64,000 bases of DNA from NCBI GenBank assembly GCA_044892505.1, contig CM097883.1, positions 266,104,001-266,168,000 of the forward strand, read 5' to 3'. Of the stretch, positions 3,500 through 44,649 are shown piece by piece (the stretch's first letter is position 1; each line of letters begins with the position of its first letter). The notes beneath the pieces are model-generated. The model saw only the letters and a list, made by a program, of their open reading frames with translations. It was not told where the DNA came from and ran no database searches. This stretch comes from Schmidtea nova. Its lineage: Eukaryota. The translations under genes and the position numbers were made by a program.

Positions 3500-3561
3500 C
3501 TTACATGTATTTTCCTTTCTCGTGTTGTTAGCTAGAGCTTGCCTTAATGTCTTAGATCTAT

Positions 3562-6247: not shown

Positions 6248-6251
6248 AAAA

Positions 6252-6270
6252 TGGTAGCAGAGCGTGGTTT
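6252..6270 (+). other. Primer-binding site complementary to initiator tRNA-Met 3' end
   Basis: TGGTAGCAGAGCGTGGTTT is the reverse complement of ...AAACCACGCTCTGCTACCA. Confidence 0.8.
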
Positions 6271-6695: not shown

Positions 6696-6913
6696 TCACA
6701 AATTTTCATAAAAACATTAGTAGGAAAGTTAAATACAATTGAAGTTAGCCTGTCAGATTTAAAAGAGAATGTGTCAAGTTTAAGGTACAAGAGAGAGAGG
6801 GAATTCCACCGAGTCACAAACGTTTACTCTTTGATGGGAAACAATTGCAAGATGGTTGTAAATTGTCTAACTATAATTTAACGTTACATTTAACGTTGGG
6901 GTTGAATGAAGGA
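6696..6913 (+). pseudogene. Ubiquitin-like domain at the N-terminus of BEL gag (frameshifted)
   Basis: [26 protein letters not shown] / [46 protein letters not shown] aligns to ubiquitin. Confidence 0.88.
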
Positions 6914-9900
6914 AGTCCTGTAACCGATGCCGAATTTGAAGCTGGATATAAAAAGCGAACAGGATTAAAAATAGCGTTAGGACGACTCCGTAATAAGGCG
7001 CTAGCTGATTCAGTTGATTCCACTGAAGAACAAAATTGAAGAAAAGCGTATGACGGTAAGTATGAAGAAGTGGTGACAGAATTAGAAAAGCTAAAGAAGC
7101 AAGCTCGGGAATTAAAAAGAGAGTGAGCTGAAGGAGATTCAGTAGGATCTAGACTATTTGGAGATGGAGTTTGATAGAATAGGGGAACTAGCTTTCACAA
7201 AGAAGGAAGAGAGCTTTTCAGTGGAAGCTATCAAAAGTCGGGAACAGTCTGTCCTAAACGAAAGTGCAAAGAAGAGGCCGAGTTTGTTAGGGGGATTGAA
7301 GCTCTTACAGCTTCCAGTATTTAATGGGAATGTAATAGAGTATTCTGGATGGCGAGCAATTGTGAGAGCTTGCATCGAGTACACAGATGAAACAAGTGAA
7401 AGGAAATACCTGTACTAAAGACAGTATTTGGAAAGGAAACCTCTGCAATTAATTGCTTATATCGGATATGGCTCTCAGGCTTTTGAAGCGGCAATAAAAC
7501 TATTGGATGAGAGACCAGAGCGATTATATTCAATGATGCGGGACGCGGTGAAGAAGTTCTTTCCAATAAGGCTTAATGTATTGGAAGACCTAGAACGGTT
7601 TGAAGAGCTACTGGGAAATATCATCTTGACGTTCAAGGACCAAAAGAGAGGAGAGTTAAACGATGGAATCCTGTATCACCAACTGTTGAAAAAGTTACCG
7701 GAAACCATGTTAATACAGTGGGCACTCAATTTTGAGTCAGGAAAGGAGGCATATGTACAGATTTTAGCGGAATTGGTCAAAAAAGAAGCTGACAGGCATC
7801 GCAAAGCATTGTACATACTGTTTGGAGAGCGAAATATAGGAAGTAGAAAATAAGTTGAAAATAGGATGAAGGTCACAAATTTTGTGGATAAATATCCAAA
7901 GGTAGAAGCTGGTGGAGAACGAATAACGACACTAAGAAATGCAAAAGAGAACATTATTTAAACCGATGTCCAGATTTTTGAAAGTATGATGCGAAAGAGA
8001 GTCATGAGTTTGCGACAAATAACGGGTTAAGTTTTAATTGTCTATCGGCAGGTCACATACTTAGAAACTGTGGAAGACCCAGTTTATGTAAAATTGAAAA
8101 CTGTAAGATAAAAGATCATTCTTTTTTACATAGCTCAGGGATAAAAATAAATGACAGTCAAAAGAAAGATGAGAATCAAAATATGTCAATGGTGACTTGT
8201 TACGCATATGTTACGTATGTATCATTGAGAACGATCCCAAATTAATTAATAAATGGAAGGAATTCCGAGTAAATGTATTACTTGACGATGCAAGTAATGT
8301 GAGTTACATTAGCAATTGGGTTGCACAGAAATTAGGGGTTGGGGAACAATGGGAAAATATTCTAGCTGGCGTGATTGGGGGAAAATCGGAAATTTAGGAA
8401 ATAAAGCCGATAGACGTGATGTTGGCAAGCAATAACAACAAAGTGAAAGTCAACTTTAAGGCCTTGGTTGTTAAAAGCGTCACGGGAGACTTAAAAGTAT
8501 GCAATTGGCAAAAGCTGACGTATAACTGGGAGCACCTAAAGGACATTCGATTCCAGATTTTTGGGAAAAGACTGCAAATAGATGTTTTAATTGGGGCAGA
8601 CTATCCACATCTGCACAGATTTATTCGAGAGGTAGGAAGGATGAGGGATGAGCCGGTTGTAAGACTGACGCATCTTCTATGGACATGTCTGGACAAGATA
8701 AACAGGAATTAAGCTCCATGACACTCCCATTGTGTCCAGAGTTATTTTTCAAAAACAGAGAGATTGGAAGATCAGATGCGGCAATTTTGGGAAATTGAGG
8801 AGACTCACATTGAAAAGAATCAGTTCAGCCAGAGTGAGGAAATATTATTGCAAAGGGTGATCGAAGGTGTGTCGTGCGAGGATGGAAGGTTCACGGTTAG
8901 ATTGTTAAGGAGGGAGAACAAGTATCAACTTCAAGATAATATAAAAATGGCTGAGAATTGTTTGAGGAGTCTGGACAACCGGTTGATAAAAGACACTGGG
9001 TTAAAAGAAAGATTCAAAGATGTGCTCAATGACTACGTGCGGAAAGGGTATATCAGGTTATTGGCAGAGAAGGAATTTTGTGAGACAAAGTGGTGGCTGC
9101 CACATTTTCCTGTGATAGAAATGGACAAGGAGACAACCAAAATTAGAATAGTCTTTGATGCTGCATCGAAAAATAATGATATTAATTTTAATGATGCTAT
9201 AGAGCAAGGGCCAAAGCTACAAAATGATTTATTTGAGATATTATTACGATTCAGAAAACATCCGGTGGCGATTGCTTGTAATATACAAAAAATGAATCTT
9301 CAGATAAATATGAATCCAGATGATAGAAAATATTTAAGATTTATATGGACTGACAATGGAAAAACTGAGGGATTTGAATTTGAGCGGCTAGTCTTCGGAC
9401 TAAATGTATCTCCGTTTCTGGCGCAGTTAGTCACCAGACGAAATGCTGAGAAATTTCGGGACAGGTTTCCGATGGCGGCACAAACAATAATAGAGTCTAC
9501 GTACATGGATGATACGATGGATTCTTTTCAATCGGTTGAGGAAGCGATCAGAATCAAGGATGAAATTATTAGTATTTGGAAAAATGCAGGAATGGTTACG
9601 AATAAATGGCTCACTAATAATGAAAAGGTATTAGAAACGATTCCTATGGAAAGGATATCAAAGCTCTTAAGTTTGAACGAGGAAAACAAAGTGGCAGTAA
9701 AAACCCTGGGACTGGTTTGGGTTGCGGCAGATGATAAATTTGGTTACGGTGTCAAAATACAAACTCAACAGTAGCTCTCGAAACGAGGATTTCTTAGTTG
9801 CTTAGCCAGAATCTTTGATCCTTTAGGATTAGCATGAAGTCTTCTAATTAGAGGTAAGTTGTTGATGCAAGTGATTTGGCTAGCTGGTACATAATGGGAT

Positions 9901-12100
9901 GATTTGGTGCCACCAGATCTTTTGAGAAAGGTTGAAAGTTGGTTGAAAGAATTTGCAATTTTGAATGAAATTAGATGCGAAAGATGTTTAATTGAAGACA
10001 AAAAGAATGAGTGGAAGATCCACATTTTCGTTGACGCTTCAAAATGCGCATACGGGGCCGTTGCTTACGTCAGACAGAGTCAAGTGAGAAGTGTGAGAAC
10101 TAACCTAATTGCAGCTAAATCCAGAGCAGTACCAATCAAGGTAGTGAGCATTCCACGACTGGAACTATTGGCAGCTGAATTGTGAGTGAAATTGTGACTA
10201 AAGGTATCACAATGTTTGAAGATAAATATGCAAGACATTACCTTCTGGAAGGATAGTGAAGACGTTTTGTATTGGATAACGCAATTAGGGCGTAATTGCA
10301 AGGTATTTGTTGCGAAGAGAATCGAGGAAATTCAACGATCAACGAGAAGATCACAGTGGAGGTATGTGCCAACGAAAGAAAACGTCGTAGTCTTGCTATC
10401 AAGAGGAATGAGCGCAGAAGAACGTAGAGATTACAAGGTGTGGTTTGAATGACCAAGGTTTCTGCGGGGGGAGGAGGATTGTTGGCCAAAATGGAAAAAT
10501 AAGGGAGCGCAAGAGACTAAGAATCAGAGCTGGATACAGAGTTTTTTCCTTACTGCGACAAGAGATGATGTAGAGCCAGTTTGGAAAACCAGTTGCTTAG
10601 ACCCAAAGACCTACTTCAAATGGAGAAGACTGGTTCGTACAAGAGCTTGGCTGAACAGGTTCATTGAAAATATTAAACAAGAAAAAACAAAACGGCAAAA
10701 TGGGACACTTACAAGTGAAGAAATTGAAGATGCGGAAGTCACATTGATTCACGAAGATCAAAACATTGAATTTTCTGAAGAATGGAAGGACATTCAGAGA
10801 GGTAAGTTTGTGTGATCGAGAAGCACACTAAAATCGTTTTGCCCCAAAATTTTGGATGACTGAATAATGCGGAGTGAGAGTCGTTTGGCAAATGCAACTT
10901 GGATGAATCCGGCGACGAAGTACCTGAGGATACTCTCAGGAAAAAGTTGGGTTGCTCGGTTAATAGTTTCAGAGATACACCAGTCATTGAAACACTACGG
11001 GAGAATGGAGTATTTGATGTCAAAAGTGAATGAAAGGTATTGGATTGTTGGTAGACAAAAATTGATTGAAAGGATAAGGAAAGAATGTGTGATTTGTCAA
11101 AAAGGGAGAGCAAATACAATGGAACAAATTATGGCGCCACTCCCTGGATTTGGAGTATATGAACCTCTGGAAGCATTTAAAAAGGTTGCGGTGGATTACA
11201 CAGGACCAATAACAACGGTCATAAGAGGCGTGGGAATCGAAGAGCGAAGCGGTATATTTGCTTATTTACCTGTCTCGTGACAAGAGCGGTGCATTAGGAG
11301 ATGTCGTACCATCAGGACACAGAGAGTTTTATCAGTGCATTCAAAAGATTCATTACACATCCTGGAACCCCCATTTTAATATTGTCTGACAACGGGAAGA
11401 ATTTTGTAGGAGCAGCAAGTGAAATTGAGAAAGTGAAGATCGATACACACTCAATCCAAAAAGGTCTCAAAAATGATATGATGAAATGGATTTTTAACCC
11501 TCCCAGCGCACCACACTTTGGAGAGTTTAACGAGATATTAGTTAAAGAAGCGAAAAAGGCCTTATAAGCTGTTGCTAGAGTTTCCGAGTTGACTGACGAG
11601 GAGCTGCAAACTGTCATTGCAGAGGCGGAAGATATGGTTAACAGTGGACCCCTGACAACTATGAGTGAGGATCCGGAAAAAGACTAAATACTGAAGCCGA
11701 ATCAATTAATCAAGCCCGGTTATAAAATATTTAGCGAGGAAGAAATATAACTTACATGAACGGGGACAAAAAAGCGATGGAAGATGATTCAGGATTTGAG
11801 CGAGAAGTTTTGGCGGCAATGGAGACAAGAAATTGTTCTTGGATGGAGGAATAGGAAGAAATGAGCAAAGGAAGGAAAAAGTTTAAAAACCGGAGATTTA
11901 GTCTGGTTATTGGAAGACGGATTATGTAAGAAATCATGGAAGCTTGGTCGAGTAGCGAAAGTCTGTCACGGAAAAGATGGACATGTGCAGGGGTTAAAGA
12001 TTCTTGGCAGGGGAACGGAGATATTGAGACCTATTTGCTAAGTTTGCCCTCTAGAGCTAAATTGGTCGGTTGATCCGCTAGAAGGGATCAAGGGAAGGGG
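6914..12100 (+). pseudogene. BEL gag-pol, many stops and frameshifts
   Basis: LPVFNGNVIEYSGW (BEL gag), CCHC knuckles near 8020-8130, LLDDAS (protease), YMDD (RT), IFVDASKCAYGAVAY (RNase H), VAVDYTGP and LSDNGKNF (integrase). Confidence 0.92.
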
Positions 12101-12102
12101 AA
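12081..12102 (+). other. Polypurine tract of second BEL element
   Basis: GAAGGGATCAAGGGAAGGGGAA followed by T-TGT. Confidence 0.8.
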
Positions 12103-12103
12103 T

Positions 12104-12650
12104 TGTTTCGCCCAAAGCAGAAGTATGTTAGCTCAGATAGAGAGCTTGCTTCTATCTGAACCTATGCGTGTGCGTTTTGGTTTGTAGATGTTTGTCGCGT
12201 CTGTGTGCGCGTACTTTATTTTTCTTACCATCGCGTCTGTGTGCGCATTATGATTTTCATGGTTATCGCGTCTGTGTGCGCGTTTTGTTGGGACTTTTAT
12301 TTGAGGTTTGGAATAAATTGATTGAGAAATAAAATCGTGGAGTTTAAAAATCTGGTTGTTTTATCGTGTGATTTGTTGGATAAAATTGAATTTCTGGGAG
12401 TTTTGAAATCTTTGCTGAGTAATTCTTTGTGATTGATTCGAATTTTCTGAAATGACATCAAGCTTGATCTTATTACATTTTAATCATGTTGGCAACGTTC
12501 TCATACAAGTAGACTCTAATTCGATAGTTGACATTCAAACTGAAGACGATGCTTTGGAAACGAAAGAGTGTATCTCTATAGATTGTGAAAATAATATTAT
12601 ATCCTCAAGAGATATCAATCCTACTTTTCAATTTAAGAAAGTTAATTGTG
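12104..12650 (+). repeat. 3' LTR of second BEL element, left half
   Basis: Colinear with the 5' LTR up to ...GTTAATTGTG (6029). Confidence 0.92.
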
Positions 12651-13093
12651 AGTAGGTAGTTAGTGGCTCCCCAACCCAGTGGCTCCCCAACCCACCCCCC
12701 CCCTAGAAAAAAAGTGGGTTGGGGAGCCACTATGTTTTTTCGTCGATCTTTTGTATAGGAAAATTTTCGTCGATCTTTTGTATAGGAAAATTTTCGTCGA
12801 TCTTTTGTATAGGAAAATTTTGTCGGTCTTTTGTACAGGTGGGTTGGGGAGCCACTATGTTTTTGGGTCGATCTTTTGTATAGGAAATTTTTATCAATCT
12901 TTTGAATAGGATTTTCTACTCGGAGATTTTTTTCTCGGGCAAAAAGGGACTCTGAAATTTTGTACAGTGATTTTTGATCTGGTATATTTGAATAGGATTT
13001 TTGTTATGGTTATTTTGAATAGAGAATTTTATGTCGGTCTTTTGTATAGAAAAATTTTTTTCAATCTTTTCTATAGGATTTTCTTTTGTCAGT
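12651..13093 (+). repeat. Left TIR (internal copies at 21275-21720, 30059-30502 and 36926-37340)
   Basis: Reverse complement of 54995-55440; contains AGTGGCTCCCCAACCCA repeats and 27-bp CGTCGATCTTTTGTATAGGAAAATTTT repeats. Confidence 0.93.
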
Positions 13094-14598
13094 CGAGGCA
13101 TATGGCTAGAGAAACTCATAGATAAAGTATAAAACGAGCTATTAACCTGGAGTTTTATTTTCCTTTTTAAGCACAGGCTCTTTGTAAGGTCAGTTTGTTT
13201 TGGAACCAACCTACGCAGATGCTTCTCTCGTTTTTCCCACCAAGGATTAGCAGGAGTTACTAACTCTTTATCGGAGTCTTTCCCCAAGAACCAATATACG
13301 TTTTACCGCTTTATTAGCAATTGGTTTGCCTGCACACTTTACTCAGAGTGTGCATTGGTAGCAATCCCTAGAGATTACTCAGTGCCTCATCACCTTTGGA
13401 CCATCTATCACCTTTACTTACACTTGGTAAACTTCCTCTCTTTGTACTCGAGTTAGTTTATTAGTGTCGAAGTGATAGATTAATGCCAGTCGAATCATAG
13501 TGGCAAGCCACAAAATCAACGACCAACATTCAACTTACATGATAGATCAACGGATTCTTTAGAGGACAAAAGATACTTGTGGTATCCGGCTCCCCCCTGC
13601 GCTGCCCCTACCACAGGTACGTTATTAAGGCAATCGTATTACCGGCCGCGTTGACGCATGTAAACCCACTTAGCAAGCCGAGTGGTGCAGTTTATCTTTT
13701 TATAACTGGTGGTCCTACTCCCACACTGTCTTTACAACTTAACACCAACCAGCTCCGAATATCTTGCTTTCGCTGTCATTTAAACGGTGAGACTGGCACT
13801 AAGCTGCGCTGCCATTGGTTATGATAAGTAGTCATAACTCGTGTAGTCCTATTCAGCAATCTGAATAGCGTAGTTTGTCTTTTTGTAGCTGGTGGTTCTA
13901 CTCCCACGCTGCCGGACAAGCATCGTACTCATCCTCATACAAACACTAATACTCTATTAAACTCGAGGCTTTGATGATGTCTTGCCTGACTCTTCAAGAG
14001 ATTTATATACATGTTTGCGTCCAGTTTTCCCGGTTCATTATTATTATAAAGATAAAATAAAATAAAATAAAGTTAAAAGGATACGATTGTTCTTGTAGAG
14101 AAGATCGAATAGGCCTAAAGAAAACTCAAAGTAATTGAACTTACCACAGGGTCTCCTCGAATGCACGACTTGGACCTAACTAGCGGGATTTATACTAAGG
14201 GAGTTCCACCCATTCTTGCACCCTCAGCCGATCGTGCACCCACCCCTTTAAGCGAAAGGAAGACCCTCTACGGACTGTCGGGAGAGTTCTTCGCAGCTTC
14301 TTCTGTTATCCCTACAATGGGTCTCGGAAGCGGCCCCAAATCCACGAGTGAAACCTACAAAGCAATCTTTTCTTCTAAATATTTTGTAATTAAATAGTTT
14401 AATTAGATCTGCCCCCTATTTTATAATCAAGCAAGCATACAGACAAACAATCAGACAACCAGAGACTAAATAAAAAGAAAATAAGTAAACAGTAAAATAA
14501 GAAGCGAAATGTGAGTTTAATATATAGAATATATGGTTATTTTAATAATAAAGATAAAGTTATAAACCAATACTGTTATTATATAAACATACAAACTA

Positions 14599-17500
14599 TT
14601 AGTGCCAATTCCTCCAAGCGCAATACATTCTCGCCGTCCAATTTAGTACTTTCAGAGATATGAGCATGGCGTCTGACTGCGTGACACCGAATTTCTGTAC
14701 GGTGTCCCATGAATCCTCGGCCCAGATACCCCGCCAGTTCAGCGTTAACGCACCGAACTCTACCGTATCTGCCCCCTGCTCAAGGACCCAGTCACGTATC
14801 TCAATCTCATCATATACCTTGGACTTTGTAGTATTCCGTTCTCTCAGATCTGACTTTTCACTAACAATTTGTACATCCACGACCATAGCACGGCGGTCCT
14901 TGATAATTACTAAATCCGGTTTCCGTATAGTCTCTTTATACGGTATAACCGGTTCCACAAGGGTCTTCCACCCCTTCTTCCTCGCGATGTCAGCTGTAAA
15001 AAGCATCACTTTATTGTGTCGTTCCACTCGCATCCCATGCGTAGCAGTGCACTTTTGTGATATGTGGCTAAGGCTGCAGGGTAACCCACAACCCGCCTTA
15101 CATATAGATGATGAAGTGGCGGAGCCGCCATTCATACGACTGAGTCGCGTCGGGGTACTAAAAAGGTTTCCACGAACTTTGACACTGTTGACGAAGGATC
15201 TACCTGTCATCAACTTAGTCCGGGCCTTAAGCCAGTTATGAACAAAAGGCACCTTGTCGCTTTCACACAGACCCTTCCCATCTAGCTTTTTATACAACAA
15301 GTCTCGCATCGACTCGTAATAGGTATGTTTTTCGTACGCCAGGGAGTCACCAGTTTTAATAGGCTTACTCCATTTGGCTAACAAGTTTCTGACGACATCC
15401 TGCTCCACTAATCCGCGAATCCTTCCATCACTGCTATCGGCAAGCCTCTTCAATCTAGTTATCTTCGCAAACTTCACCTCAGCCAAGAGAGTAGGTACCC
15501 CCATTCCTCCATCTTTAACTTTGGAGTGAATGTACGAAAAGCACGTATCTTTGGGTAGATGTAGCCATTTGCGAACAAGCTTCCGGGTTATCTTGTCCAG
15601 TTCACAAAGCTCCAAGTCATCGGTTTCGCCTAAAATTGCTTCGTGCAAAATGCCCGGTATAAGGAAGTTAGTTAAGACTTCCAGTTTTTGTTGTGGTTTA
15701 ATAGGGGAGATAGTAATATTATTAATGCGTTCTGTAAATATTTTAGTTAAGTTATTTTTCATTTTACCCAGCGGACCAAAATAAATGCCTAGATATTTAT
15801 AAAAATCATTTGATAACAAAATGGGAAATTCCTCTTCACCATCGGCCACTCGCTCCGGCGTTATTATCCAACTGTCATTCTTCCCGTCTCTTTTGGCTAC
15901 AATGGATGCACACTTTGCAGCATTCACTGAAAGACCATTTTCACCAAGTTCTCGAAGAACAGAAGAAAGAATGTCTTGGAGTCCTTCTTTGGTCTCAGCT
16001 AGAAGGATAATATCATCAGCGTAGGCCATAATGGGATAGGTATTTCCATTCATCTTGTATCCGAGTCGGGTTTTGTAGGCTTTCTCAATCGCCAACTCAA
16101 TAATGTTATTAAAAAGTGCGGGTGAAAGCGGATCCCCTTGCTTTACACCTCTTTTGAACGTAGCTGGCGTTCCATCTACAATAGTCTCGGCGTCAGTGTA
16201 GCTATTTTCTATATAGTTTAAAAGTAGTTTGGGGTAATGGGCTATTTTTGCCGCTCTCAAAATACTGTCATGATTGACAGAATCAAAAGCTTTCTTCATG
16301 TCAATGAAGGCGAGGGCAATATTCTTTTTATTTTTACGTGCATCTGAGAGGATAGAGTCTAGTAAAATGGTATTCTCTAGACATCCATCAATGGGCTTGA
16401 ACCCTTTTTGGGCTGAAAAACTTTTATCATAGTTTAGGGTTCGCTGAGCGAGAATTTTATTTAAAACTCTAGTTATAACTGAATTTATTGAAATAGGCCG
16501 ATAATCACTTGGACTTTTTGGATTATCGGTTTTTGGTATTAGCGTTGTTCTGGAGCTTTTTAGAACCGGAGGAAGATAACCTAGATAAATAACCAAATTA
16601 AATAACTTTACCAAAACAGACGTCGGGATCGTCCTTAGTGTTGCTGTAGTAATGCCATCAGGACCACAGGCAGTCTTCAGGTCTATTTCCTTAACCGAAT
16701 TCAGAACCTCTGAATCGGTTATAGGTAAGACCATATTACTCTCCTCAGTTACATTTTCTACAGCTCTTGTATCAGCATCTGATTCCCTTTCGAAAACCCC
16801 ACGCCAATACTCACCCAGACCCGTAACTGGTTCGATACCACTCACCAAAGAATCGACCTTCCCCCCGAGTATCACTTTGGCTGCCTCACTTCTGTCTTTT
16901 TTGAATAGTTCTTGGAGAGCTCCATATGTTTTTCTTCGGAACTCTTTCTTCAGATGCTTCTTCGCATCCTTGGACGGCTTGACTAGTGGGCTAACCTTAC
17001 TACGGGGTGGCTTTCCTTTGGGACGATGGCTAAAGGTTATATCATTACAATATATCTCTAGACATCTTCTTTTTTCATCAGACGCAGGAGGACCGTGGAT
17101 AATATAGTCAAGGTCGCGCTCTTGTCAATCATCAATACCTTCCTTCTTTGGTAGTGCGGAGAGGTACTTGATGATTGCTTCTTTGTCCGATTCATCGTGG
17201 GCGAACTGAACCTGCTGCTTGTTTTGCGGTATGCAAATATTGTCGTCAAGGTTTTCCCTTAACACTTGTAATATTTTACAATACCTAACCGTTTTCAAGT
17301 GTGCTCTAATGGACTCCTTGGAGCGATCAGCACTAACGGTCCCTAATTTGTACATCAAAACTCCCCTATTACATTCGAGTCTCTCACATGCCACATGCAC
17401 CTTAGCCATGCGGACTTCCTCCTCAACAGTCCAAATTGCGTTACGCGAGTTGATTTTATTTTTATTTATTTTATTTATCTTAGCGGCATCGTGTTTATCA

Positions 17501-17625
17501 CGATGTTTGTTACTGGTGTGTACCCCCTTCCCAATTTTAGTCGAAAAAACTGCTTCACAAAAATCACAAGCGAAAGTGTCGGCGGCTTCCTCTCCCTTCG
17601 TTTTTAATTTATCATTTGTTTTCAT
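14599..17625 (-). pseudogene. R2 ORF copy 1 with W-to-stop near 17125
   Basis: Track ORFs 17125-17625 and 14599-16875 are in one frame, split by TGA where other copies have TGG; QGDPLSP and YADD intact. Confidence 0.92.
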
Positions 17626-17899
17626 TTTTCATTTTTCAGTTTTTAAGGGAGTGTTTTACAGTAAGACACCCTCCCTTGGTAATGTCTCACCGTCCTAAAA
17701 TTAACCTACGTAGATACCTTACCTAGTTCTTTAGTGGTGGTGGTCGTATACAATCTTATTCTTAAACATTATTATTTTCCTAGCATGAAAGCCCACATAC
17801 AACCAGTAGTTTGTTGTATGTGGGCTTTCGTGTTAGCATGCTCCCTGATACCAGAGCATTACTTTAAAAGACATATACAACATACAATATAACTACATA

Positions 17900-18110
17900 T
17901 TTAAAAGTCTGTGCAAAATGCCCACATAGTACCCCTTGGGGCACTATGTGGGCAATTATACATTACAACTTTTGTACACAAATGAAAATACATTATACAC
18001 AATGTGACATGAGTACTATTAACTACATATTTAAAAGTCTGTGCAAAATGCCCACATAGTACCCCTTGGGGCACTATGTGGGCAATTATACATTACAACT
18101 TTTATACACA
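17900..18110. repeat. ~130-bp duplicated unit with a 17-bp-stem hairpin (also ~26510-26740, ~35290-35510, and 3 copies at ~49890-50170)
   Basis: TGCCCACATAGTACCCC-TT-GGGGCACTATGTGGGCA. Confidence 0.9.
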
Positions 18111-18219
18111 AAATCATAATTTACAAATACAGATTGGTGGGGAGGACATACTGGGCCAGTCCTCTCCTTATATAATACCATAGTTAATACTTAAATACCT
18201 GAGTACTAATTTATTTCAA

Positions 18220-18358
18220 GTACCTAAAATACCTGGAAGCCTTAAAATACCTGAAATACCTAAAATACCTAAAATACCTAGGATACCTAAAATACCTAAG
18301 ATACCTAAAATACCTAAAATACCTAAAAATACCTAAAAATACCTAAAATACCTGAAAA
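18220..18358. repeat. 9-bp minisatellite (AATACCTAA/AATACCTAC)n in the R2 5' region (also 26845-27060 and 35625-35842)
   Basis: Read directly; copy number differs between R2 copies. Confidence 0.92.
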
Positions 18359-18989
18359 TAGAATGACAATATGGTTAACAATTAATATATTTAATAATTT
18401 AAGGGTCAAGGAAAATTTTGGCGTGGCGGTGTTGGGTTAAGGGGGAGATCTCGATCTAGTTAGTACTTATAAACTAGTCAATTCTCGTACCAACATGTTT
18501 CCGGTTGAGTAGTGGCCTACTACTCCACCGAAAACTGTCAGTCTGATCTCCCTTATCCGCCCTTACCCTAGCGGCTGGTTTGAACTTATGTAGCAGTACT
18601 ACACAGACCCAATCACGTTTATAGTGAGAAAGGTATCACTCTGATCTGCCGGACGCACCCTACCAGTGTAGGATCTACTCTATAGGGACTATAGAGGGTC
18701 TATCCCGCCTTGTTATTGGAGAGATAGAACGATGTAAATTTGCAAACACTAACTATGCGTAAGCTATATATTACCTTTTTTAAGGACAGGTATAAAGTTG
18801 ACCACTACCCCAAGAACGCGACTGCTTTAGACGCTTTGTTCAAGGCGAACACATGGTACTCGATAGCCCTTAATGAGAGTAATGCGGCACCGAATTGTCG
18901 AAGCACCGAAGCACTCCAATTCTTCTACCGCAGACCTAAGATCAATTGGCAATCAGTGGTATTTTTCACCCACCAACTGACAAACACTT

Positions 18990-19830
18990 AGAATTTTACT
19001 ATATAGCTAGGCTATATAGAACAAAATCATTTTTATAGTGGGATTTGCCACCACCGAGTTTACTAAGCAACTAGGCCACTTAGAACAATTCCTTTGGCAA
19101 TGAGAATTGCAAAACACCTGTACACAGGACCGACAATAACGTGTCGACGACAAGACCTGATTAACCCGGGCCCTTATCAGTAATCAGCAGTATGTTTCAC
19201 CCACCAACTACCAAACGTCCCGTATTTTTACTATATAGCTAGGCTATATAGAACAAAATCATTTTTATAGTGGGAATTGCCACCACTTATGTAACCAACA
19301 TCGAGCCAACATCGAGTTTACTAAGCAACTAGGCCACTTAGAACAATTCCTTTGGCAATGAGAATTGCAAAACACCTGTACACAGGACCGACAATCACGT
19401 GTCGACGACAAGACCTGATTAACCCGGGCCCTTATCAGTAATCAGCAGTATGTTTCACCCACCAACTACCAAACGTCCCGTATTTTTACTATATAGCTAG
19501 GCTATATAGAACAAAGTCAATTTATAGTGAGATTTGCTACCACTGATATAACTAACATCGAGCCAACATCGAGTTTACTAAGCAACTAGGCCACTTAGAA
19601 CAATTCCTTTGGCAATGAGAATTGCAAAACACCTGTACACAGGACCGACAATCACGTGTCGACGACAAGACCTGATTAACCCGGGCCCTTATCAGTAATC
19701 AGCAGTATGTTTCACCCACCAACTACCAAACGTCCCGTATTTTTACTATAAAGCTAGGCTATATAGAACAAAGTCAATTTATAGTGAGATTTGCTACCAC
19801 TGATATAACCAACATCGAACCAACCACGAT
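18990..19830. repeat. ~258-bp tandem repeat x3+ in the R2 5' region (also ~27745-28620)
   Basis: Unit begins ACTATATAGCTAGGCTATATAG at ~18998, 19229, 19488 and 19745. Confidence 0.92.
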
Positions 19831-20256
19831 TATTACCCTCACTATATTTTACCCAACATCGACCAGATCGTTCAATCAGTTCCTCTAGTTTCAAAGGCGT
19901 CCCCACACTACACTCGCAGAATAAGTACTAATGTATATATTCGCTGGTAGATTTAAGATCCATTATAAGAATTAACACTGTTTTTAACAAAAGAGTGAGA
20001 GTAATTCTTAGTATAATCTCAGTACAGTCTTCCTAGTTCGGTTACTCCGGGCGTCCCACAGAGATTCTCACTAGAAGATCGGATCTTAAACTTCATGTTG
20101 CCATGAAGGTATATTTTCATATACTGTCACCTTAAAAAGGCACTTTCGGACAGATATATATTACCAAAAGTGAACCTTTCAAAACGCTACTATAGAACGT
20201 AACGATAATTAAAATCACCCCCTGAAGGAAGGACAATGAGATCAAACGACTATTAC

Positions 20257-20326
20257 CGAGTTTACGTTTTTGGTTCCATATTTTCATATGGTTAACAGGA
20301 AGACCCCGTGAAGGCTTGTAAACTCG
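20257..20326 (-). ncRNA. HDV-like ribozyme core, R2 copy 1
   Basis: Same motif as 47374-47443 with two substitutions in the P2/P3 junction region. Confidence 0.6.
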
Positions 20327-20591
20327 AACTTCTTTCTCACGCACATATGTACTAAACTGTACTATTGTACTAGAAAGTTGTAAATCGCAAACATCCAGCC
20401 AACAATTACGGTAGATGTTGTATTATATTCACCATGGCAGGTTCCAATTGTCCTTTCCTCGGTTATAGTCAGTAACCTAAGAAAATACTATGATAAATCA
20501 TAGTTTACTACAACTCCGGATATCTCATGACACCACTTTGTAAGTTATAGTTATTTAAGTTAGACAATTGGAGATCCTAGCAAATTAGACT

Positions 20592-20840
20592 TAGTCCGTG
20601 CCAGTTCTAAGTTGACCGTTTAGTGTACAACGACGATCGTCAATCCGAAGACCAACAACCAAAGCAAAATTCGCCCATCAACCAGTTAAAAAAGTACCAT
20701 CTCAACACCATTTCAAGTTGCCTCAAAACAGCATCAAAACAGCTCAATTCTATACCAACTGACTTCTTAACTAAGCCCATCATACCCGGTCCTTAGAGCC
20801 AATCCTTTTACCGAAGGTACGGATCTAATTTGCCGACTTC
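20592..20840 (-). rRNA. 28S: 28S rRNA gene fragment (~250 bp) at the 5' end of R2 copy 1
   Basis: GAAGTCGGCAAATTAGATCCGTACCTTCGGTAAAAGGATTGGCTCTAAGG ... CAACTTAGAACTGGCACGGAC match conserved LSU motifs flanking an expansion segment. Confidence 0.9.
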
Positions 20841-21274
20841 TTTTTTTCTTACCATCGCGTCTGTGTGCGCATTATGATTTTCATGGTTATCGCGTCTGTG
20901 TGCGCGTTTTGTTGGGACTTTTATTTGAGGTTTGGAATAAATTGATTGAGAAATAAAATCGTGGAGTTTAAAAATCTGGTTGTTTTATCGTGTGATTTGT
21001 TGGATAAAATTGAATTTCTGGGAGTTTTGAAATCTTTGCTGAGTAATTCTTTGTGATTGATTCGAATTTTCTGAAATGACATCAAGCTTGATCTTATTAC
21101 ATTTTAATCATGTTGGCAACGTTCTCATACAAGTAGACTCTAATTCGATAGTTGACATTCAAACTGAAGACGATGCTTTGGAAACGAAAGAGTGTATCTC
21201 TATAGATTGTGAAAATAATATTATATCCTCAAGAGATATCAATCCTACTTTTCAATTTAAGAAAGTTAATTGTG
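20841..21274 (+). repeat. Copy of BEL LTR flank attached to array unit 2 (also 29625-30058, 36505-36925 and partial 38590-38717)
   Basis: Matches ~12219-12650 and is preceded by a T-tract. Confidence 0.93.
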
Positions 21275-23223
21275 AGTAGGTAGTTAGTGGCTCCCCAACC
21301 CAGTGGCTCCCCAACCCACCCCCCCCTCCCTAGAAAAAAAGTGGGTTGGGGAGCCACTATGTTTTTTCGTCGATCTTTTGTATAGGAAAATTTTCGTCGA
21401 TCTTTTGTATAGGAAAATTTTCGTCGATCTTTTGTATAGGAAAATTTTGTCGGTCTTTTGTACAGGTGGGTTGGGGAGCCACTATGTTTTTGGGTCGATC
21501 TTTTGTATAGGAAATTTTTATCAATCTTTTGAATAGGATTTTCTACTCGGAGATTTTTTTCTCGGGCAAAAAGGGACTCTGAAATTTTGTACAGTGATTT
21601 TTGATCTGGTATTTTTGAATAGGATTTTTGTTATGGTTATTTTGAATAGAGAATTTTATGTCGGTCTTTTGTATAGAAAAATTTTTTTCAATCTTTTCTA
21701 TAGGATTTTTTTTTGTCAGTCGAGGCATATGGCTAGAGAAACTCATAGATAAAGTATAAAACGAGCTATTAACCTGGAGTTTTATTTTCCTTTTTAAGCA
21801 CAGGCTCTTTGTAAGGTCAGTTTGTTTTGGAACCAACCTACGCAGATGCTTCACTCGTTTTTCCCACCAAGGATTAGCAGGAGTAATAAACTCTTTATCG
21901 GAGTCTTTCCCCAAAAGCCAACATACGTTTTACCGCTTTATTAGCAATTGGTTTGCCTGCACACTTTACTCAGAGTGTACATAGGTAGCAATCCCTAGAG
22001 ATTACTCAGTGCCTCATCACCTTTGGACCATCTATCACCTTTACTTACACTTGGTAAACTTCCTCTCTTTGTACTCGAGTTAGTTTATTAGTGTCGAAGT
22101 GATAGATTAATGCCAGTCGAATCATAGTGGCAAGCCACAAAATCAACGACCAACATTCAACTTACATGATAGATCAACGGATTCTTTAGAGGACAAAAGA
22201 TACTTGTGGTATCCGGCTCCCCCCTGCGCTGCCCCCACCACAGGTACGTTATTAAGGCAATCGTATTACCGGCCGCGTTGACGCATGTAAACCCACTTAG
22301 CAAGCCAAGTGGTGCAGTTTATCTTTTTATAACTGGTGGTCCTACTCCCACACTGTCTTTACAACTTAACACCAACCAGCTCCGAATATCTTGCTTTCGC
22401 TGTCATTTAAACGGTGAGACTGGCACTAAGCTGCGCTGCCAATGGTTATGATAAGTAGTCATAACTCGTGTAGTCCTATTCAGCAATCTGAATAGCGTAG
22501 TTTGTCTTTTTGTAGCTGGTGGTTCTACTCCCACACTGCCGGACAAGCATCGTACTCATCCTCATACAAACACTAATACTCTATTAAACTCGAGGCTTTG
22601 ATAATGTCTTGCCTGACTCTTCAAGAGATTTATATACATGTTTGCGTCCAGTTTTCCCGGTTCATTATTATTATTAAGATAAAATAAAATAAAATAAAGT
22701 TAAAAGGATACGATTGTTCTTGTAGAGAAGATCGAATAGGCCTAAAGAAAACTCAAAGTAATTGAACTTACCACAGGGTCTCCTCGAATGCACGACTTGG
22801 ACCTAACTAGCGGGATTTATACTAAGGGAGTTCCACCCATTCTTGCACCCTCAGCCGATCGTGCACCCACCCTTTAAGCGAAAGGAAGACCCTCTACGGA
22901 CTGTCGGGAGAGTTCTTCGCAGCTTCTTCTGTTATCCCTACAATGGGTCTCGGAAGCGGCCCCAAATCCACGAGTGAAACCTACGAAGCAATCTTTCCTT
23001 CTAAATATTTTGTAAATAAGTAATTTAATTAAATCTGCCCCCTATTTTATAGTCAAGCAAACATACAGACAAACAACCAGACAACCAGAGACTAAATGAA
23101 AATAAGTAAACAATAAATAAAATAAGAAACGAAATGTGAGTTTAGTATATAGAATATATGGTTATTTTAATAATAAAGATAATGTTATAAACCAATACTG
23201 TTATTATATAAACATACAAACTA

Positions 23224-26200
23224 TTAGTGCCAATTCTTCCAAGCGCAATACATTCTCGCCGTCCAATTTAGTACTTTCAGAGATATGAGCATGGCGTCTG
23301 ACTGCGTGACACCGAATTTCTGTACGGTGTCCCATGAATCCTCGGCCCAGATACCCCGCCAGTTCAGCGTTAACGCACCGAACTCTACTGTATCTGCCCC
23401 CTGTCCAAGGACCCAGTCACGTATCTCAATCTCATCATATACTTTGGACTTTGTAGTATTCCGTTCTCTCAGATCTGACTTTTCACTAACAATTTGTACA
23501 TCCACGACCATAGCACGGCGGTCCTTGATAATTACTAAATCCGGTTTCCGTATAGTCTCTTTATACGGTATAACCGGTTCCACAAGGGTCTTCCACCCCT
23601 TCTTCCTCGCGATGTCAGCTGTAAAAAGCATCACTTTATTGTGTCGTTCCACTCGCATTCCATGCGTAGCAGTGCACTTTTGTGATATGTGGCTAAGACT
23701 GCAGGGTAACCCACAACCCGCCTTACATATAGATGATGAAGTGGCGGAGCCGCCATTCATACGACTGAGTCGCGTCGGGGTACTAAAAAGGTTTCCACGA
23801 ACTTTGACACTGTTGACGAAGGATCTACCTGTCATCAACTTAGTCCGGGCCTTAAGCCAGTTATGAACAAAAGGCACCTTGTCGCTTTCACACAGACCCT
23901 TCCCATCTAGCTTTTTATACAACAAGTCTCGCATCGACTCGTAATAGGTATGTTTTTCGTACGCCAGGGAGTCACCAGTTTTAATAGGCTTACTCCATTT
24001 GGCTAACAAGTTTCTGACGACATCCTGCTCCACTAATCCGCGAATCCTTCCATCACTGCTATCGGCAAGCCTCCTCAATCTAGTTATCTTCGCAAACTTC
24101 ACCTCAGCCAAGAGAGTAGGTACCCCCATTCCTCCATCTTTAACTTTGGAGTGAATGTACGAAAAGCACGTATCTTTGGGTAGATGTAGCCATTTGCGAA
24201 CAAGCTTCCGGGTTATCTTGTCCAGTTCACAAAGCTCCAAGTCATCGGTTTCGCCTAAAATTGCTTCGTGCAAAATGCCCGGTATAAGGAAGTTAGTTAA
24301 GACTTCCAGTTTTTGTTGTGGTTTAATAGGGGAGATAGTAATATTATTAATGCGTTCTGTAAATATTTTAGTTAAGTTATTTTTCATTTTACCCAGCGGA
24401 CCAAAATAAATGCCTAGATATTTATAAAAATCATTTGATAACAAAATGGGAAATTCCTCTTCACCATCGGCCACTCGCTCCGGCGTTATTATCCAACTGT
24501 CATTCTTCCCGTCTCTTTTGGCTACAATGGATGCACACTTTGCAGCATTCACTGAAAGACCATTTTCACCAAGTTCTCGAAGAACAGAAGAAAGAATGTC
24601 TTGGAGTCCTTCTTTGGTCTCAGCTAGAAGGATAATATCATCAGCGTAGGCCATAATGGGATAGGTATTTCCATTCATCTTGTATCCGAGTTGGGTTTTG
24701 TAGGCTTTCTCAATCGCCAACTCAATAATGTTATTAAAAAGTGCGGGTGAAAGCGGGTCCCTTTGCTTTACACCTCTTTTGAACGTAGCTGGCGTTCCAT
24801 CTACAATAGTCTCGGCGTCAGTGTAGCTATTTTCTATATAGTTTAAAAGTAGTTTGGGGTAATGGGCTATTTTTGCCGCTCTCAAAATACTGTCATGATT
24901 GACAGAATCAAAAGCTTTCTTCATGTCAATGAAGGCGAGGGCAATATTCTTTTTATTTTTACGTGCATCTGAGAGGATGGAGTCTAGTAAAATGGTATTC
25001 TCTAGACATCCATCAATGGGCTTGAACCCTTTTTGGGCTGAAAAACTTTTATCATAGTTTAGGGTTCGCTGAGCGAGAATTTTATTTAAAACTCTAGTTA
25101 TAACTGAATTTATTGAAATAGGCCGATAATCACTTGGACTTTTTGGATTATCGGTCTTTGGTATTAGCGTTGTTCTGGAGCTTTTTAGAACCGGAGGAAG
25201 ATAACCTAGAAAAATAACCAAATTAAATAACTTTACCAATACAGACGTTGGGATCGTCCTTAGTGTTGCTGTAGTAATGCCATCAGGACCACAGGCAGTC
25301 TTCAGGTCTATTTCCTTAACTGAATTCAGAACCTCTGAATCGGTTATAGGTAAAACCATATTACTCTCCTCAGTTACAGTCTCTACCGCTCTTGTATCAG
25401 CATCTGATTCCCTTTCGAAAACCCCACGCCAATACTCACCCAGACCCGTGACTGGTTCGATACCACTCACCAAAGAATCGACCTTCCCCCCGAGTATCAC
25501 TTTGGCTGCCTCACTTCTGTCTTTTTTGAATAATTCTTGGAGAGCTCCATATGTTTTTCTTCGGAACTCTTTCTTCAGATGCTTCTTCGCATCCTTGGGC
25601 GGCTTGACTAGTGGGCTAACCTTACTACGGGGTGGCTTTCCTTTGGGACGATGGCTAAAGGTTATATCATTACAATATATCTCTAGACATCTTCTTTTTT
25701 CATCAGACGCAGAAGGACCGTGGATAATATAGTCAAGGTCGCGCTCTTGCCAATCATCGATACCTTCCTTCTTTGGTAGTGCGGAGAGGTATTTAATGAT
25801 TGCTTCTTTGTCCGATTCATCGTGGGCGAACTGAACCTGCTGCTTGTTTTGCGGTATGTAAATATTGTCGTCAGGGTTTTCCCTTAACACTTGTAATATT
25901 TTACAATACCTAACCGTTTTCAAGTGTGCTCTAATGGACTCCTTGGAGCGATCAGCACTAACGGTCCCTAATTTGTACATTAAAACTCCTCTATTACATT
26001 CGAGTCTCTCACATGCCACATGCACCTTAGCCATGCGGACTTCCTCCTCAACAGTCCAAATTGCGTTACGCGAGTTGATTTTATTTTTATTTATTTTATT
26101 TATCTTAGCGGCATCGTGTTCATCACGATGTTTGTTACTGGTGTGTACCCCCTTCCCAATTTTAGTCGAAAAAACTGCTTCACAAAAATCACAAGCGAAA

Positions 26201-26250
26201 GTGTCGGCGGCTTCCTCTCCCTTCGTTTTTAATTTATCATTTGTTTTCAT
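23224..26250 (-). CDS. R2-type protein, 1008 aa (C2H2 ZF, Myb, RT, CCHC, REL endonuclease)
   Basis: CDFC..H...H; WTVEEE..RSKESIR (Myb); QRDPLSP and AYADD; CKAGC..SLSHISQKC; RHNKV; KPDLVI..VVDV. Confidence 0.95.
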   Translation of the reverse strand: MKTNDKLKTKGEEAADTFACDFCEAVFSTKIGKGVHTSNKHRDEHDAAKINKINKNKINSRNAIWTVEEEVRMAKVHVACERLECNRGVLMYKLGTVSADRSKESIRAHLKTVRYCKILQVLRENPDDNIYIPQNKQQVQFAHDESDKEAIIKYLSALPKKEGIDDWQERDLDYIIHGPSASDEKRRCLEIYCNDITFSHRPKGKPPRSKVSPLVKPPKDAKKHLKKEFRRKTYGALQELFKKDRSEAAKVILGGKVDSLVSGIEPVTGLGEYWRGVFERESDADTRAVETVTEESNMVLPITDSEVLNSVKEIDLKTACGPDGITTATLRTIPTSVLVKLFNLVIFLGYLPPVLKSSRTTLIPKTDNPKSPSDYRPISINSVITRVLNKILAQRTLNYDKSFSAQKGFKPIDGCLENTILLDSILSDARKNKKNIALAFIDMKKAFDSVNHDSILRAAKIAHYPKLLLNYIENSYTDAETIVDGTPATFKRGVKQRDPLSPALFNNIIELAIEKAYKTQLGYKMNGNTYPIMAYADDIILLAETKEGLQDILSSVLRELGENGLSVNAAKCASIVAKRDGKNDSWIITPERVADGEEEFPILLSNDFYKYLGIYFGPLGKMKNNLTKIFTERINNITISPIKPQQKLEVLTNFLIPGILHEAILGETDDLELCELDKITRKLVRKWLHLPKDTCFSYIHSKVKDGGMGVPTLLAEVKFAKITRLRRLADSSDGRIRGLVEQDVVRNLLAKWSKPIKTGDSLAYEKHTYYESMRDLLYKKLDGKGLCESDKVPFVHNWLKARTKLMTGRSFVNSVKVRGNLFSTPTRLSRMNGGSATSSSICKAGCGLPCSLSHISQKCTATHGMRVERHNKVMLFTADIARKKGWKTLVEPVIPYKETIRKPDLVIIKDRRAMVVDVQIVSEKSDLRERNTTKSKVYDEIEIRDWVLGQGADTVEFGALTLNWRGIWAEDSWDTVQKFGVTQSDAMLISLKVLNWTARMYCAWKNWH

Positions 26251-44630: not shown

Positions 44631-44649
44631 AAAATTTGAATCTTTTGCA

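Follow-up and report, generated by a model that had tools for sequence, protein, structure and literature searches.

R2 retrotransposons of the D clade, with R2Bm of Bombyx mori as the canonical example, contain a single ORF for one CCHH finger, a reverse transcriptase with a YADD motif, a CCHC motif and a restriction-like endonuclease. Canonical copies are surrounded by the 28S gene, with their 3' end at /TAGCC...GCCTCG (slashes mark junctions) and their 5' junction at, or a few nucleotides from, the canonical site, and 5'-truncated as well as non-autonomous derivatives exist. Further traits of R2 are an HDV-like self-cleaving ribozyme at the 5' end and transcription together with pre-rRNA. 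D-clade R2 proteins protect an upstream half-site of ~40 bp (PMC11204384). Some fish R2 families sit in real 28S genes and keep the canonical 3' junction, yet >100 bp of the 28S upstream are missing from them at a family-constant position, which the authors read as replacement on integration (Kojima et al., 2016; PMC5035012). For R1, an element of another clade with an APE endonuclease, insertions go into a 22-bp 28S R1 site that lies within the D. ananassae IGS, and tandem arrays of R1 and of R1/R2 outside the rDNA provide a precedent for array growth by amplification (Stage and Eickbush, 2009; PMC2718515). R2 SIDEs lack an ORF and share R2-like terminal segments and junctions with their partner (Eickbush and Eickbush, 2012; PMC3414825). 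In flatworms, the non-site-specific R2NS-1_SMed and R2NS-1_CSi occur outside rDNA (PMC5035012).

The 64-kb stretch of DNA analysed here (the window) contains five R2-family insertions, three of them full-length (E1, E2 and E4), one 5'-truncated (E3) and one non-autonomous. All lie within a 42.8-kb block, and this block splits a BEL/Pao-like LTR retrotransposon in its 3' LTR (Table 1).

Table 1. Features of the block, with T5 and T3 denoting the upstream and downstream 28S pieces.
Feature	Position	Strand	Remark
B, left part of BEL/Pao-like 3' LTR	12121-12651	+	94% identical to intact 5' LTR 5498-6030
'A' repeat unit 1 + ACTGAC + A-run beside 28S tag	12652-13093	-	
T3 tag of E1, 15 nt	13094-13108	-	
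R2 copy E1 body, 7482 bp	13109-20590	-	
E1 ORF	14599-17625	-	broken: 1 in-frame stop
T5 upstream of E1, 250 nt	20591-20840	-	LSU match 89 bits
B' LTR fragment, 435 bp	20841-21275	+	100% identical in array units
'A' repeat + A-run, unit 2	21276-21720	-	
T3 tag, unit 2	21721-21735	-	
R2 copy E2 body, 7639 bp	21736-29374	-	intact ORF 23224-26250, 1008 aa
T5, unit 2	29375-29624	-	
B' LTR fragment between E2 and unit 3	29625-30059	+	
'A' repeat + A-run, unit 3	30060-30502	-	
T3 tag, unit 3	30503-30517	-	
R2 copy E3, 5'-truncated, 5987 bp	30518-36504	-	intact ORF 32002-35031; no T5
A-rich filler, 23 nt, at E3 5' junction	36505-36527	-	absent from E2
B'' LTR fragment	36528-36926	+	36 bp shorter at element-proximal end
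'A' repeat + A-run, unit 4	36927-37340	-	minus one 27-bp subrepeat
T3 tag, unit 4	37341-37355	-	
Non-autonomous R2-type element (SIDE-like), 984 bp	37356-38339	-	
T5, unit 4	38340-38589	-	99.6% identical to other T5
B''' LTR fragment, 130 bp	38590-38719	+	then A-like satellite
Diverged A-family satellite	38720-39300	-	131-bp period
AT-rich palindrome, 793 bp, 17% GC	46070-46862	.	directly upstream of inverted copy E4
T5 of E4	46864-47109	+	starting 4 nt inside array edge
R2 copy E4 body, 7870 bp	47110-54979	+	intact ORF 50461-53481, 1006 aa
T3 tag of E4	54980-54994	+	
A-run + 'A' repeat of E4	54995-55439	+	end = exact inverted copy of block left end
Y, right part of split 3' LTR	55441-55669	+	opens with second ATTGTGA

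R2 copies and a SIDE-like element

A first-pass annotation of this DNA had recognised the elements as R2, and the predicted proteins bear this out. The ORF product matches the R2Bm structure (PDB 8gh6) with an E value of 1e-121 over residues 225-990, its N-terminal finger aligns to that of R2Bm, and Pfam RVT_1 is matched with an E value of 6e-33; pattern searches found one CCHH finger, a reverse transcriptase with YADD and a CCHC motif, and a restriction-like endonuclease block is present. Judged from these sequences, the elements are true R2 of D type, sharing with R2NS-1_SMed (PMC5035012) the D-type architecture, a flatworm host, here probably a planarian, and a location outside rDNA; no R2 in the databases exceeds 35% identity to their protein. 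Unlike canonical R2, they have bodies of 7.5-7.9 kb with a repeat-rich 5' UTR of 3.1 kb; in E1, whose copy (13094-20840) lies on the minus strand, a 5' UTR with tandem repeats is followed by the ORF and a 1.5-kb 3' UTR. The E1 ORF retains its start and terminal stop without frameshift and has one in-frame stop, and the ORFs of E2, E3 and E4 are intact.

Between E2 and E4, dS amounts to 0.149 and dN/dS to 0.14, and on the E1 and E2 branches 19 synonymous and 12 non-synonymous changes were counted where 22% synonymous changes are expected under neutrality (P = 3e-6). By these counts, the body differences bear the signature of purifying selection. The R2 bodies are mosaics of two to three recombining lineages. 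E3 is almost identical to E2, and its junction filler and the loss of upstream frame sequence are typical of 5'-truncated R2 insertions. No Rfam ribozyme matched the R2 5' end, even in short-stretch scans, and no P1 emerged when the surroundings of a CACGGGG block, which resembles the published CCUCCUCGUGG motif, were searched in a simple way; we know of no dedicated R2 ribozyme model in Rfam.

The non-autonomous copy (37341-38589) measures 1.25 kb with both 28S pieces. Its body, whose longest ORF is 72 aa, resembles a section of the R2 5' UTR (~72% similarity) and the terminal 150 nt of the R2 3' UTR (~79%), and it has the same GGACTAA/ and /TAGCC junctions as the autonomous copies. Like R2 SIDEs (PMC3414825), it combines the absence of an ORF with R2-like ends and the junctions of a partner. 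Unlike them, it shares only 72-79% similarity with the R2 of the same locus and thus did not arise from that R2 by a recent internal deletion.

28S pieces and junctions

It had been proposed that complete copies open with ~250 bp of 28S, a proposal that would have failed had this segment not aligned to LSU rRNA. The 250-nt piece (T5) does align to Rfam LSU_rRNA_eukarya (RF02543; model positions ~1908-2127, 89 bits, E = 7e-22), a match that appears in short-stretch scans only and is missed by whole-window scans, and it differs from two published Schmidtea mediterranea 28S probes at 3 of 40 and 2 of 25 positions. Every complete copy starts in this way, and the 5'-truncated copy at 30503-36504 lacks the piece, so that T5 lies upstream of four of the five insertions. 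The 5' start GAAGTCGGCAAATTAG... was found at 20840, 29624 and 38589 (all minus strand) and, shortened by 4 nt, at 46864 on the plus strand; beside the LTR piece and beside the AT-rich palindrome, the 28S piece thus has left edges that agree to within 4 nt. At the LTR/28S junction there is a microhomology, AAGT..CG.C.

All five insertions terminate in the 15-nt T3 tag TAGCCATATGCCTCG, present without mismatch at five window positions (Table 1), a count reached in 0 of 100 shuffles. As had been noted before, this near-canonical motif corresponds, but for one mismatch, to the 28S immediately downstream of the R2 site: the canonical bottom-strand nick junction /TAGCCAAATGCCTCG is matched as /TAGCCATATGCCTCG in all five copies. 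The site reads polyA/AGCCAAATGCCTCGTCATC in relative L002, one base off the window motif, and CTCTTCAGG/TAGCCAAATGCCTCGT in an S. mediterranea probe across the R2 site, and the same canonical downstream site is given by Kojima et al. (2016, S3 Fig; PMC5035012). In R2NS-1_SMed, by contrast, the listed 3' flanks are unrelated and without TAGCC (PMC5035012).

In the four copies with a 5' end, the junction follows directly after GGACTAA, ~150 nt upstream of the canonical site and not, as in canonical R2, at or within a few nucleotides of it. In real rDNA of relative L001, GGAC and the R2 junction are ~150 nt apart, and judged against this rDNA the intervening ~150 nt of 28S are absent from the copies, in line with the first-pass annotation. 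Neither the 5' ends nor the 3' UTRs of the window copies contain a significant remnant of this stretch, and its local alignment to the 3'-terminal 400 nt of E2, of E4 and of the 984-bp element gave z ≤0.8. The locus resembles the fish R2 in its canonical 3' junction and in missing upstream 28S at a constant position, but fish families have a 28S-like stretch in their 3' UTR (PMC5035012). The R2 5' end and the 28S just past GGAC show a weak 20-nt resemblance (z = 2.6), global similarity being absent.

The copies were also correctly placed outside rDNA. Within the window there is no rRNA match beyond the 250-nt and 15-nt pieces, although large scans may miss short fragments, and no intact R2 site with up to three mismatches allowed. 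Instead of a 28S gene, with which canonical R2 is surrounded, only 250 nt upstream and 15 nt downstream are present, set among an LTR fragment, a satellite and a palindrome.

Flanks and bodies have separate histories

The block is bracketed by a 7-bp duplication, ATTGTGA (12645-12651, and again from 55441). Its 'A' repeat is a satellite-like unit of 443 bp with 27-bp subrepeats and a hairpin. As the diverged A satellite also contains ACTGAC and an A-run, these are native to the satellite, and it is this satellite-native sequence that the T3 tag adjoins. The array LTR pieces are 100% identical to each other and 96.2% identical to the 5' LTR, so the array is younger than the LTR element. By such comparisons, both the LTR element and the body divergence predate the array.

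Between E1 and E2, the flanks show 2 mismatches in 1139 positions and the bodies 146 in 7481 (P = 6e-8). There are 0 mismatches along 440 bp of LTR fragment plus 28S piece, and right after GGACTAA the value is ~4% (2-4 per 50 nt); over their whole length these array bodies are ~2% different, with synonymous sites predominating. Similarly, the 984-bp element shares its flanks at 99.6-100% (one mismatch), whereas its body is unalignable to the R2 bodies. In these two independent comparisons, similarity flips exactly at GGACTAA/ and /TAGCC. The 28S pieces, the 'A' repeat and the 435-bp LTR fragment are 99.8-100% identical across array units, and the 28S pieces stay 99.6-100% identical across bodies that have diverged by 2% to more than 30%. 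Flanks that are near-identical while bodies diverge indicate that the 28S pieces share their history with the neighbouring host DNA and not with the bodies. Sequence comparison of the five insertions in this single 64-kb window thus shows that the R2 bodies have histories separate from their flanks, whose identity may alternatively stem from homogenisation by gene conversion.

This result gives no support to the earlier suggestion that former target DNA has become part of the element, for the 28S pieces evolve with the LTR and 'A' flanks. Independent outer flanks, as would be expected for 28S carried by the element, were found at the 5' side (two contexts) and not at the 3' side (a single context). 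The cluster is an unusual case of known R1 and R2 behaviours and not a target-absorbing element.

Origin of the 28S frames

The explanation that we favour, and to which we give about an even chance on the basis of these alignments, is that the 28S frames are target-side DNA that multiplied at the DNA level and that the bodies arrived by separate retrotransposition. A frame consists of the 250-nt piece ending in GGACTAA and the 15-nt TAGCCATATGCCTCG, beside the 'A' satellite and outside rDNA. The first frame was perhaps seeded by a 28S-tagged R2 co-transcript, and a founding insertion copied from such a transcript fits the matching left edge and the 15-nt 3' tag, a route on record for R1 outside rDNA (PMC2718515). 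Amplification of frame, 435-bp LTR and 'A' repeat generated a four-unit tandem array and one inverted unit, as the near-identity of everything outside the bodies shows. Each body is a member in its own right of a living population of R2 and joins its frame at the canonical /TAGCC 3' junction and a fixed 5' junction ~150 nt upstream. The bodies may have been inserted site-specifically, through target-primed reverse transcription, when the frames still had a usable site; integration would then have replaced the 150 nt, a mechanism put forward for some fish R2. R1 outside rDNA offers parallels in short 28S at both ends, repeated use of an ectopic mini-target and amplified arrays (PMC2718515), but there upstream tags measure 7-28 bp as compared with 250 nt plus a 150-nt skip, and in the window several lineages and a non-autonomous element occupy identical frames. 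That frames were valid targets is an inference, against which it speaks that no empty frame occurs among those of the window and that the present ones lack the ~40 bp upstream half-site. Also counting against the target-frame explanation, the one sign of a cause for the fixed 5' junction is the weak 20-nt resemblance, the 3' UTR lacks the 28S-like sequence of the fish families, and the coincident left edge and the 15-nt tag would be more natural for tags borne on RNA.

Such RNA-borne tags form an alternative that we consider rather unlikely, though worth weighing. R2 and its non-autonomous partner would have been co-transcribed with flanking 28S and inserted outside rDNA carrying 250 nt of upstream and ~15 nt of downstream 28S, the 150-nt gap being fixed in the sources; in later rounds the tags would serve as homology arms, so that a new cDNA pairs with a frame and swaps the resident body, leaving the flanks unchanged. 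If so, the 250 nt would remain part of R2 RNAs, which would begin at GAAGUCGGC. The left edge, equal within 4 nt in two contexts, the abutment of the 3' tag on ACTGAC and the A-run, and the microhomology at the LTR/28S junction all speak for such tags, as do full-length R1 copies outside rDNA with ≤14 nt of downstream 28S besides their upstream tags (PMC2718515) and ribozyme cleavage upstream in 28S, which leads to uniform junctions via annealing (PMC3774820); body turnover in frames without the upstream half-site would also be accounted for. However, 250 nt is ~10 times longer than any reported tag, and tags that stay 99.6-100% identical over such diverged bodies are not evolving with the element. 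Moreover, identical LTR and 'A' flanks around differing bodies are impossible by independent non-specific insertions, nothing in the window speaks directly for cDNA-templated repair as a means of replacing resident copies, and a search for a 5' processing signal at the element found none.

We regard it as improbable that the cluster has a purely DNA-level history, in which an rDNA orphon with one R2 moved out, was trimmed by deletion and was duplicated in inverted and tandem orientation, body differences reflecting later gene conversion with other R2 copies and local deletions, with no local retrotransposition. This would explain why the shared unit flanks include an LTR fragment that R2 RNA could not hold and why E2 and E3 are nearly identical, and Drosophila non-rDNA tandem arrays of R-element derivatives arose by amplifying one event (PMC2718515). 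However, converting in the 984-bp element would need just 15 nt of 3' homology plus a 79%-similar stretch of 150 nt, the switch points fall exactly on both element junctions in both comparisons, random breakpoints would neither repeat the left edge nor leave a 15-nt right remnant, and E3 has junction filler. An assembly artefact, in which reads from rDNA and reads from repeats were wrongly joined to give the array, is hardly credible to us. The region is very repetitive and the window holds three N runs, but none of these falls within 12121-55669; the five junction pairs agree internally, the graded divergences (0%, ~1% and ~4%) suit a biological history, and the block is enclosed by a clean 7-bp duplication inside a recognisable LTR.

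Organization and setting of the R2 array

Self-comparison of the window and reading of its junctions revealed four units arranged head-to-tail on the minus strand and an inverted fifth unit on the plus strand. In element orientation, the unit order is a 435-bp LTR fragment (B'), a 250-nt piece of upstream 28S sequence (T5, ending with GGACTAA), the element body, a 15-nt downstream 28S tag (T3), ACTGAC with an A-run, and a 443-bp satellite-like repeat (A). The motif TAGCCATATGCCTCG was found five times with no mismatch, compared to 0.07 occurrences expected from shuffled windows, and the T5 start GAAGTCGGCAAATTAG... was found three times and once more in a form shorter by 4 nt. Four of the bodies are R2 copies (E1 to E4), and the remaining one is a small element without an ORF.

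Features of the window and their positions
Feature	Position	Strand	Remarks
R2-type retrotransposon copy	13094-20840	minus	E1 with both 28S pieces
E1 body	13109-20590	minus
E2 body	21736-29374	minus
E3 body	30518-36504	minus	5'-truncated, without T5, with 23 nt of A-rich filler
Small element	37356-38339	minus	984 bp, ORF-less
T5 of inverted fifth unit	46864-47109	plus
E4 body	47110-54979	plus	inverted fifth unit
T3 of E4 unit	54980-54994	plus
A repeat of E4 unit	to 55439	plus
BEL/Pao-like LTR retrotransposon	5498-12651 and 55441-55669		RVT_1 and DUF5641 ORFs
Intact 5' LTR	5498-6252
RVT_1 ORF of BEL/Pao-like element	8764-9774
A-like 131-bp repeats	38941-39278
423-bp repeat	39320-40400
21-bp repeat	42055-43836		C-rich, strand-biased, GC skew -0.89
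128-bp repeat	44699-45121

The R2 ORFs encode 1006-1009 amino acids and match Bombyx R2 cryo-EM chains over residues 225-990 (E 1e-121), with which the N-terminal zinc finger aligns as well. Pfam identified RVT_1 in the ORF, and pattern checks revealed one CCHH finger, YADD and CCHC. As judged from these sequence matches, the ORFs encode bona fide R2 proteins of D-type architecture. The nearest database proteins in a word search are only 32-35% identical, and neither an exact match to the ORF in public assemblies nor a match to T5 patterns in two metagenome scans was obtained, all in collections other than the host genome. The E1 ORF carries one in-frame stop and no frameshift, and those of E2, E3 and E4 are open. 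At 7.5-7.9 kb, the body length is unusually large.

The block formed by these units (12652-55439) interrupts a BEL/Pao-like LTR retrotransposon within its 3' LTR and is bordered on both sides by ATTGTGA (12645-12651 and 55441-55447), a 7-bp duplication. The 42.8-kb block carries A at either terminus, in opposite orientation and matching exactly from the first base on; by its sequence, the block resembles an inverted duplication or else a giant insertion of the foldback or TIR type. The LTRs of the split element are 3.8-6% diverged. An order of events follows from the layers of divergence, which amount to 3.8% between LTRs, 1-1.4% between the inverted unit and the array (T5, A) and 0-0.2% among array flanks.

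Also, a PBS-like sequence (TGGTAGCAGAGC) follows the 5' LTR of the BEL/Pao-like element, and a DUF5641 ORF at 580-1278 suggests another BEL/Pao-like copy at the window start. A series of satellites (38720-45121) separates the array from the inverted copy. A near-perfect palindrome of 793 bp and 17% GC (46070-46862) ends exactly at the T5 start of the inverted R2 copy; comparison rejected the idea that it is an inverted copy of the right half of the LTR. A Penelope-like element fragment (2645-5268) contains an ORF with RVT_1 and GIY-YIG domains (3562-4752) between 929-bp inverted repeats (2645-3570 and 4341-5268; 99.4%). Host gene pieces at 55493-56113 (minus), 1665-2261 (plus) and 60708-62174 (minus) correspond to proteasome alpha-6, TCP-1 chaperonin and an RNase_T-like exonuclease, and the best matches of the proteasome alpha-6 exon are from Platyhelminthes (51-58% identity). 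The window is therefore ordinary chromosomal DNA of a flatworm.

28S pieces and the bodies they enclose

When T5 was scanned alone with Rfam, it aligned to eukaryotic LSU rRNA at about 1908-2127 (89 bits, E 7e-22), which corresponds to helix 63/expansion segment 27 with conserved borders, and it differs from two published Schmidtea mediterranea 28S probes by 3/40 and 2/25 mismatches, expansion-segment sequence included. The proposal of the first-pass annotation that complete copies begin in 28S is thus borne out. Together with the flatworm matches of the proteasome alpha-6 exon, the probe matches make a planarian or a near relative the most likely host. Canonical downstream 28S sequence was read from L002, a database relative residing in real rDNA (polyA/AGCCAAATGCCTCGTCATC), and from an S. 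mediterranea probe (CTCTTCAGG/TAGCCAAATGCCTCGT), and is also given in S3 Fig of Kojima et al. (PMC5035012). T3 differs from it by one base, in line with the proposed single mismatch at the end of every copy, and stops after 15 nt; the ACTGAC and A-run that follow resemble a motif of the A-family satellite itself.

In L001, another relative residing in real rDNA, about 150 nt separate GGAC from the R2 junction, and this stretch, already noted as missing, is absent from the window units, with no significant diverged remnant in element 5' ends or 3' UTRs except for one 20-nt patch (z 2.6). The L002 contig contains no upstream 28S junction. Neither other rDNA nor an intact R2 site was found in the window, as had been stated; however, whole-window Rfam scans detected no rRNA at all and only short-window scans revealed T5, so that the absence of other rDNA holds within the sensitivity of large scans, which may miss short fragments. 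Burke et al. reportedly described planarian R5 and divergent 28S genes in 2003, and the 28S pieces may derive from divergent 'type II' rDNA.

Comparison of E1 with E2 gave no mismatch across 440 bp of LTR fragment and T5, whereas 2-4 mismatches per 50 nt start directly after GGACTAA; overall, mismatches amount to 2/1139 for the flanks as opposed to 146/7481 for the bodies (P 6e-8). Similarly, the flanks of the small element differ from those of E2 by only one mismatch. Its body can be aligned to that of E2 solely in a block of the 5' UTR (72%) and in the last 150 nt (79%), and similarity switches exactly after GGACTAA and before TAGCC. For E2 versus E4, dS is 0.149 and dN/dS 0.14, and of 31 codon changes polarised to the branches of E1 and E2 (those of E1 counted on an alignment), 19 are synonymous, compared to 22% expected under neutrality (P 3e-6). 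The bodies are mosaics: the initial 770 nt of E2 resemble E4 (99.3%), its centre E1. By these codon data, the body differences arose under purifying selection, and the bodies thus diverged as functioning elements before residing in their present units. The LTR fragments within the array show 100% identity among themselves and 96.2% to the other LTR of their retrotransposon; the frames, consisting of T5 and T3, were therefore copied very recently, and at the DNA level, since R2 could not carry an LTR fragment as cargo. On these alignments, the 28S pieces behave as flanking DNA. The switch between flank and body speaks against the earlier view that former target DNA had become part of the element at both ends, a view which retains in its favour the constant left edge of T5 and the 15-nt T3.

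Possible origins of the 28S-flanked units

R2 is a textbook case of a strictly site-specific element and has become a model for targeted insertion; to our knowledge, few cases show R2 life outside rDNA. At this locus, identical, very short 28S remnants within ordinary repeat DNA are occupied by several R2 lineages that look active and by a non-autonomous partner, and the 5' junction common to all of them lies 150 nt from the canonical one. The best explanation, which we hold to be about as probable as all others together, is that the frames are ectopic 28S remnants duplicated as DNA and that they contain members, independent of one another, of an active R2 population plus its non-autonomous partner. 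Frames would have multiplied by DNA duplication outside rDNA. R2 members would have entered them through target-primed reverse transcription starting at the canonical nick, and their 5' ends would have been joined 150 nt upstream in a manner specific to this family. By analogy, each ingredient has a precedent: R1 has hit a 22-bp 28S site in the D. ananassae IGS, and arrays are known outside rDNA (PMC2718515); in fish R2, more than 100 bp of 28S are replaced on integration (PMC5035012); and 28S sequence left on the cDNA anneals to give uniform junctions (PMC3774820). Several observations fit this explanation poorly. D-clade R2 proteins bind an upstream half-site of about 40 bp (PMC11204384), which the present frames lack, no empty frame was seen in the window, T3 has only 15 nt, and the left edge of T5 is constant within 4 nt beside unrelated sequences, the LTR fragment and the 793-bp AT-rich palindrome. 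As genuine ectopic targets, the frames would set an upper bound on the 28S context needed by the window R2 and would show that integration can replace 150 nt of target.

The constant T5 edge and the 15-nt T3 would be expected if a founding copy had been reverse-transcribed from a 28S-tagged co-transcript, an origin documented for R1 outside rDNA (PMC2718515), and for this reason RNA-borne tags, as suggested by the first-pass annotation, are kept as the main rival. We consider it rather unlikely, and T5 tracks the flanks and not the bodies, as seen for E1 versus E2, for the small element and from selection on the bodies. If 28S does travel on RNA, co-transcript tags would be far longer than known for R1 and possibly allow homology-guided replacement. 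In a related and clearly improbable version, RNAs of R2 and partner would retain 250 nt of 28S from upstream, with a fixed skip of 150 nt, as well as a short tag from downstream, and both would serve as homology arms; the protein would re-nick an occupied frame at the downstream half-site still present there, and the new cDNA would pair with the 28S piece of the frame and replace the resident copy. Mini-targets outside rDNA that R2 had seeded itself could then allow it to persist and turn over. A purely DNA-level history of the units is slightly less probable still, and an assembly artefact very improbable. Repeated non-specific insertion at one LTR site with a 435-bp duplication each time was rejected, because DNA duplication accounts better for three identical junctions; also, the site is unlike the R2 target. 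Whether targets or RNA-borne tags are assumed, the locus preserves a natural record, compact and datable, of how R2 has turned over (LTR 3.8%, inverted unit about 1%, array flanks 0-0.2%).

Features of the R2 untranslated regions

The 5' UTR comprises 3.1 kb with tandem repeats of 258, 9 and 110 bp and lacks a sense ORF. The 110-bp repeat (17912-18092, 26517-26801 and 49874-50170) belongs to the element, because it is found in every full-length copy, and holds a perfect GC-rich hairpin (GCCCACATAGTGCCCC...GGGGCACTATGTGGGC) with sub-threshold matches to miRNA families. Rfam scans and a P1-pairing scan found no HDV-like ribozyme in the window R2. A conserved block, TTACGGGCCT(T/C)CACGGGGT..CTTCCTG.TAACCATA, is common to the R2 5' UTR and the otherwise diverged small element, for example at 20300-20345 and 37900-37950 on the minus strand, and is located at +530 nt from the T5 start in R2 copies and at +679 nt in the small element. 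This block may function as an RNA motif, and its sequence is similar to the core motif published for the R2 ribozyme. In L002, a JGI metagenome contig and the closest database relative (32% amino acid identity), a poly(A) tract about 57 nt long precedes the 28S site (4395-4455), whereas the window R2 copies lack an A tail at this junction.
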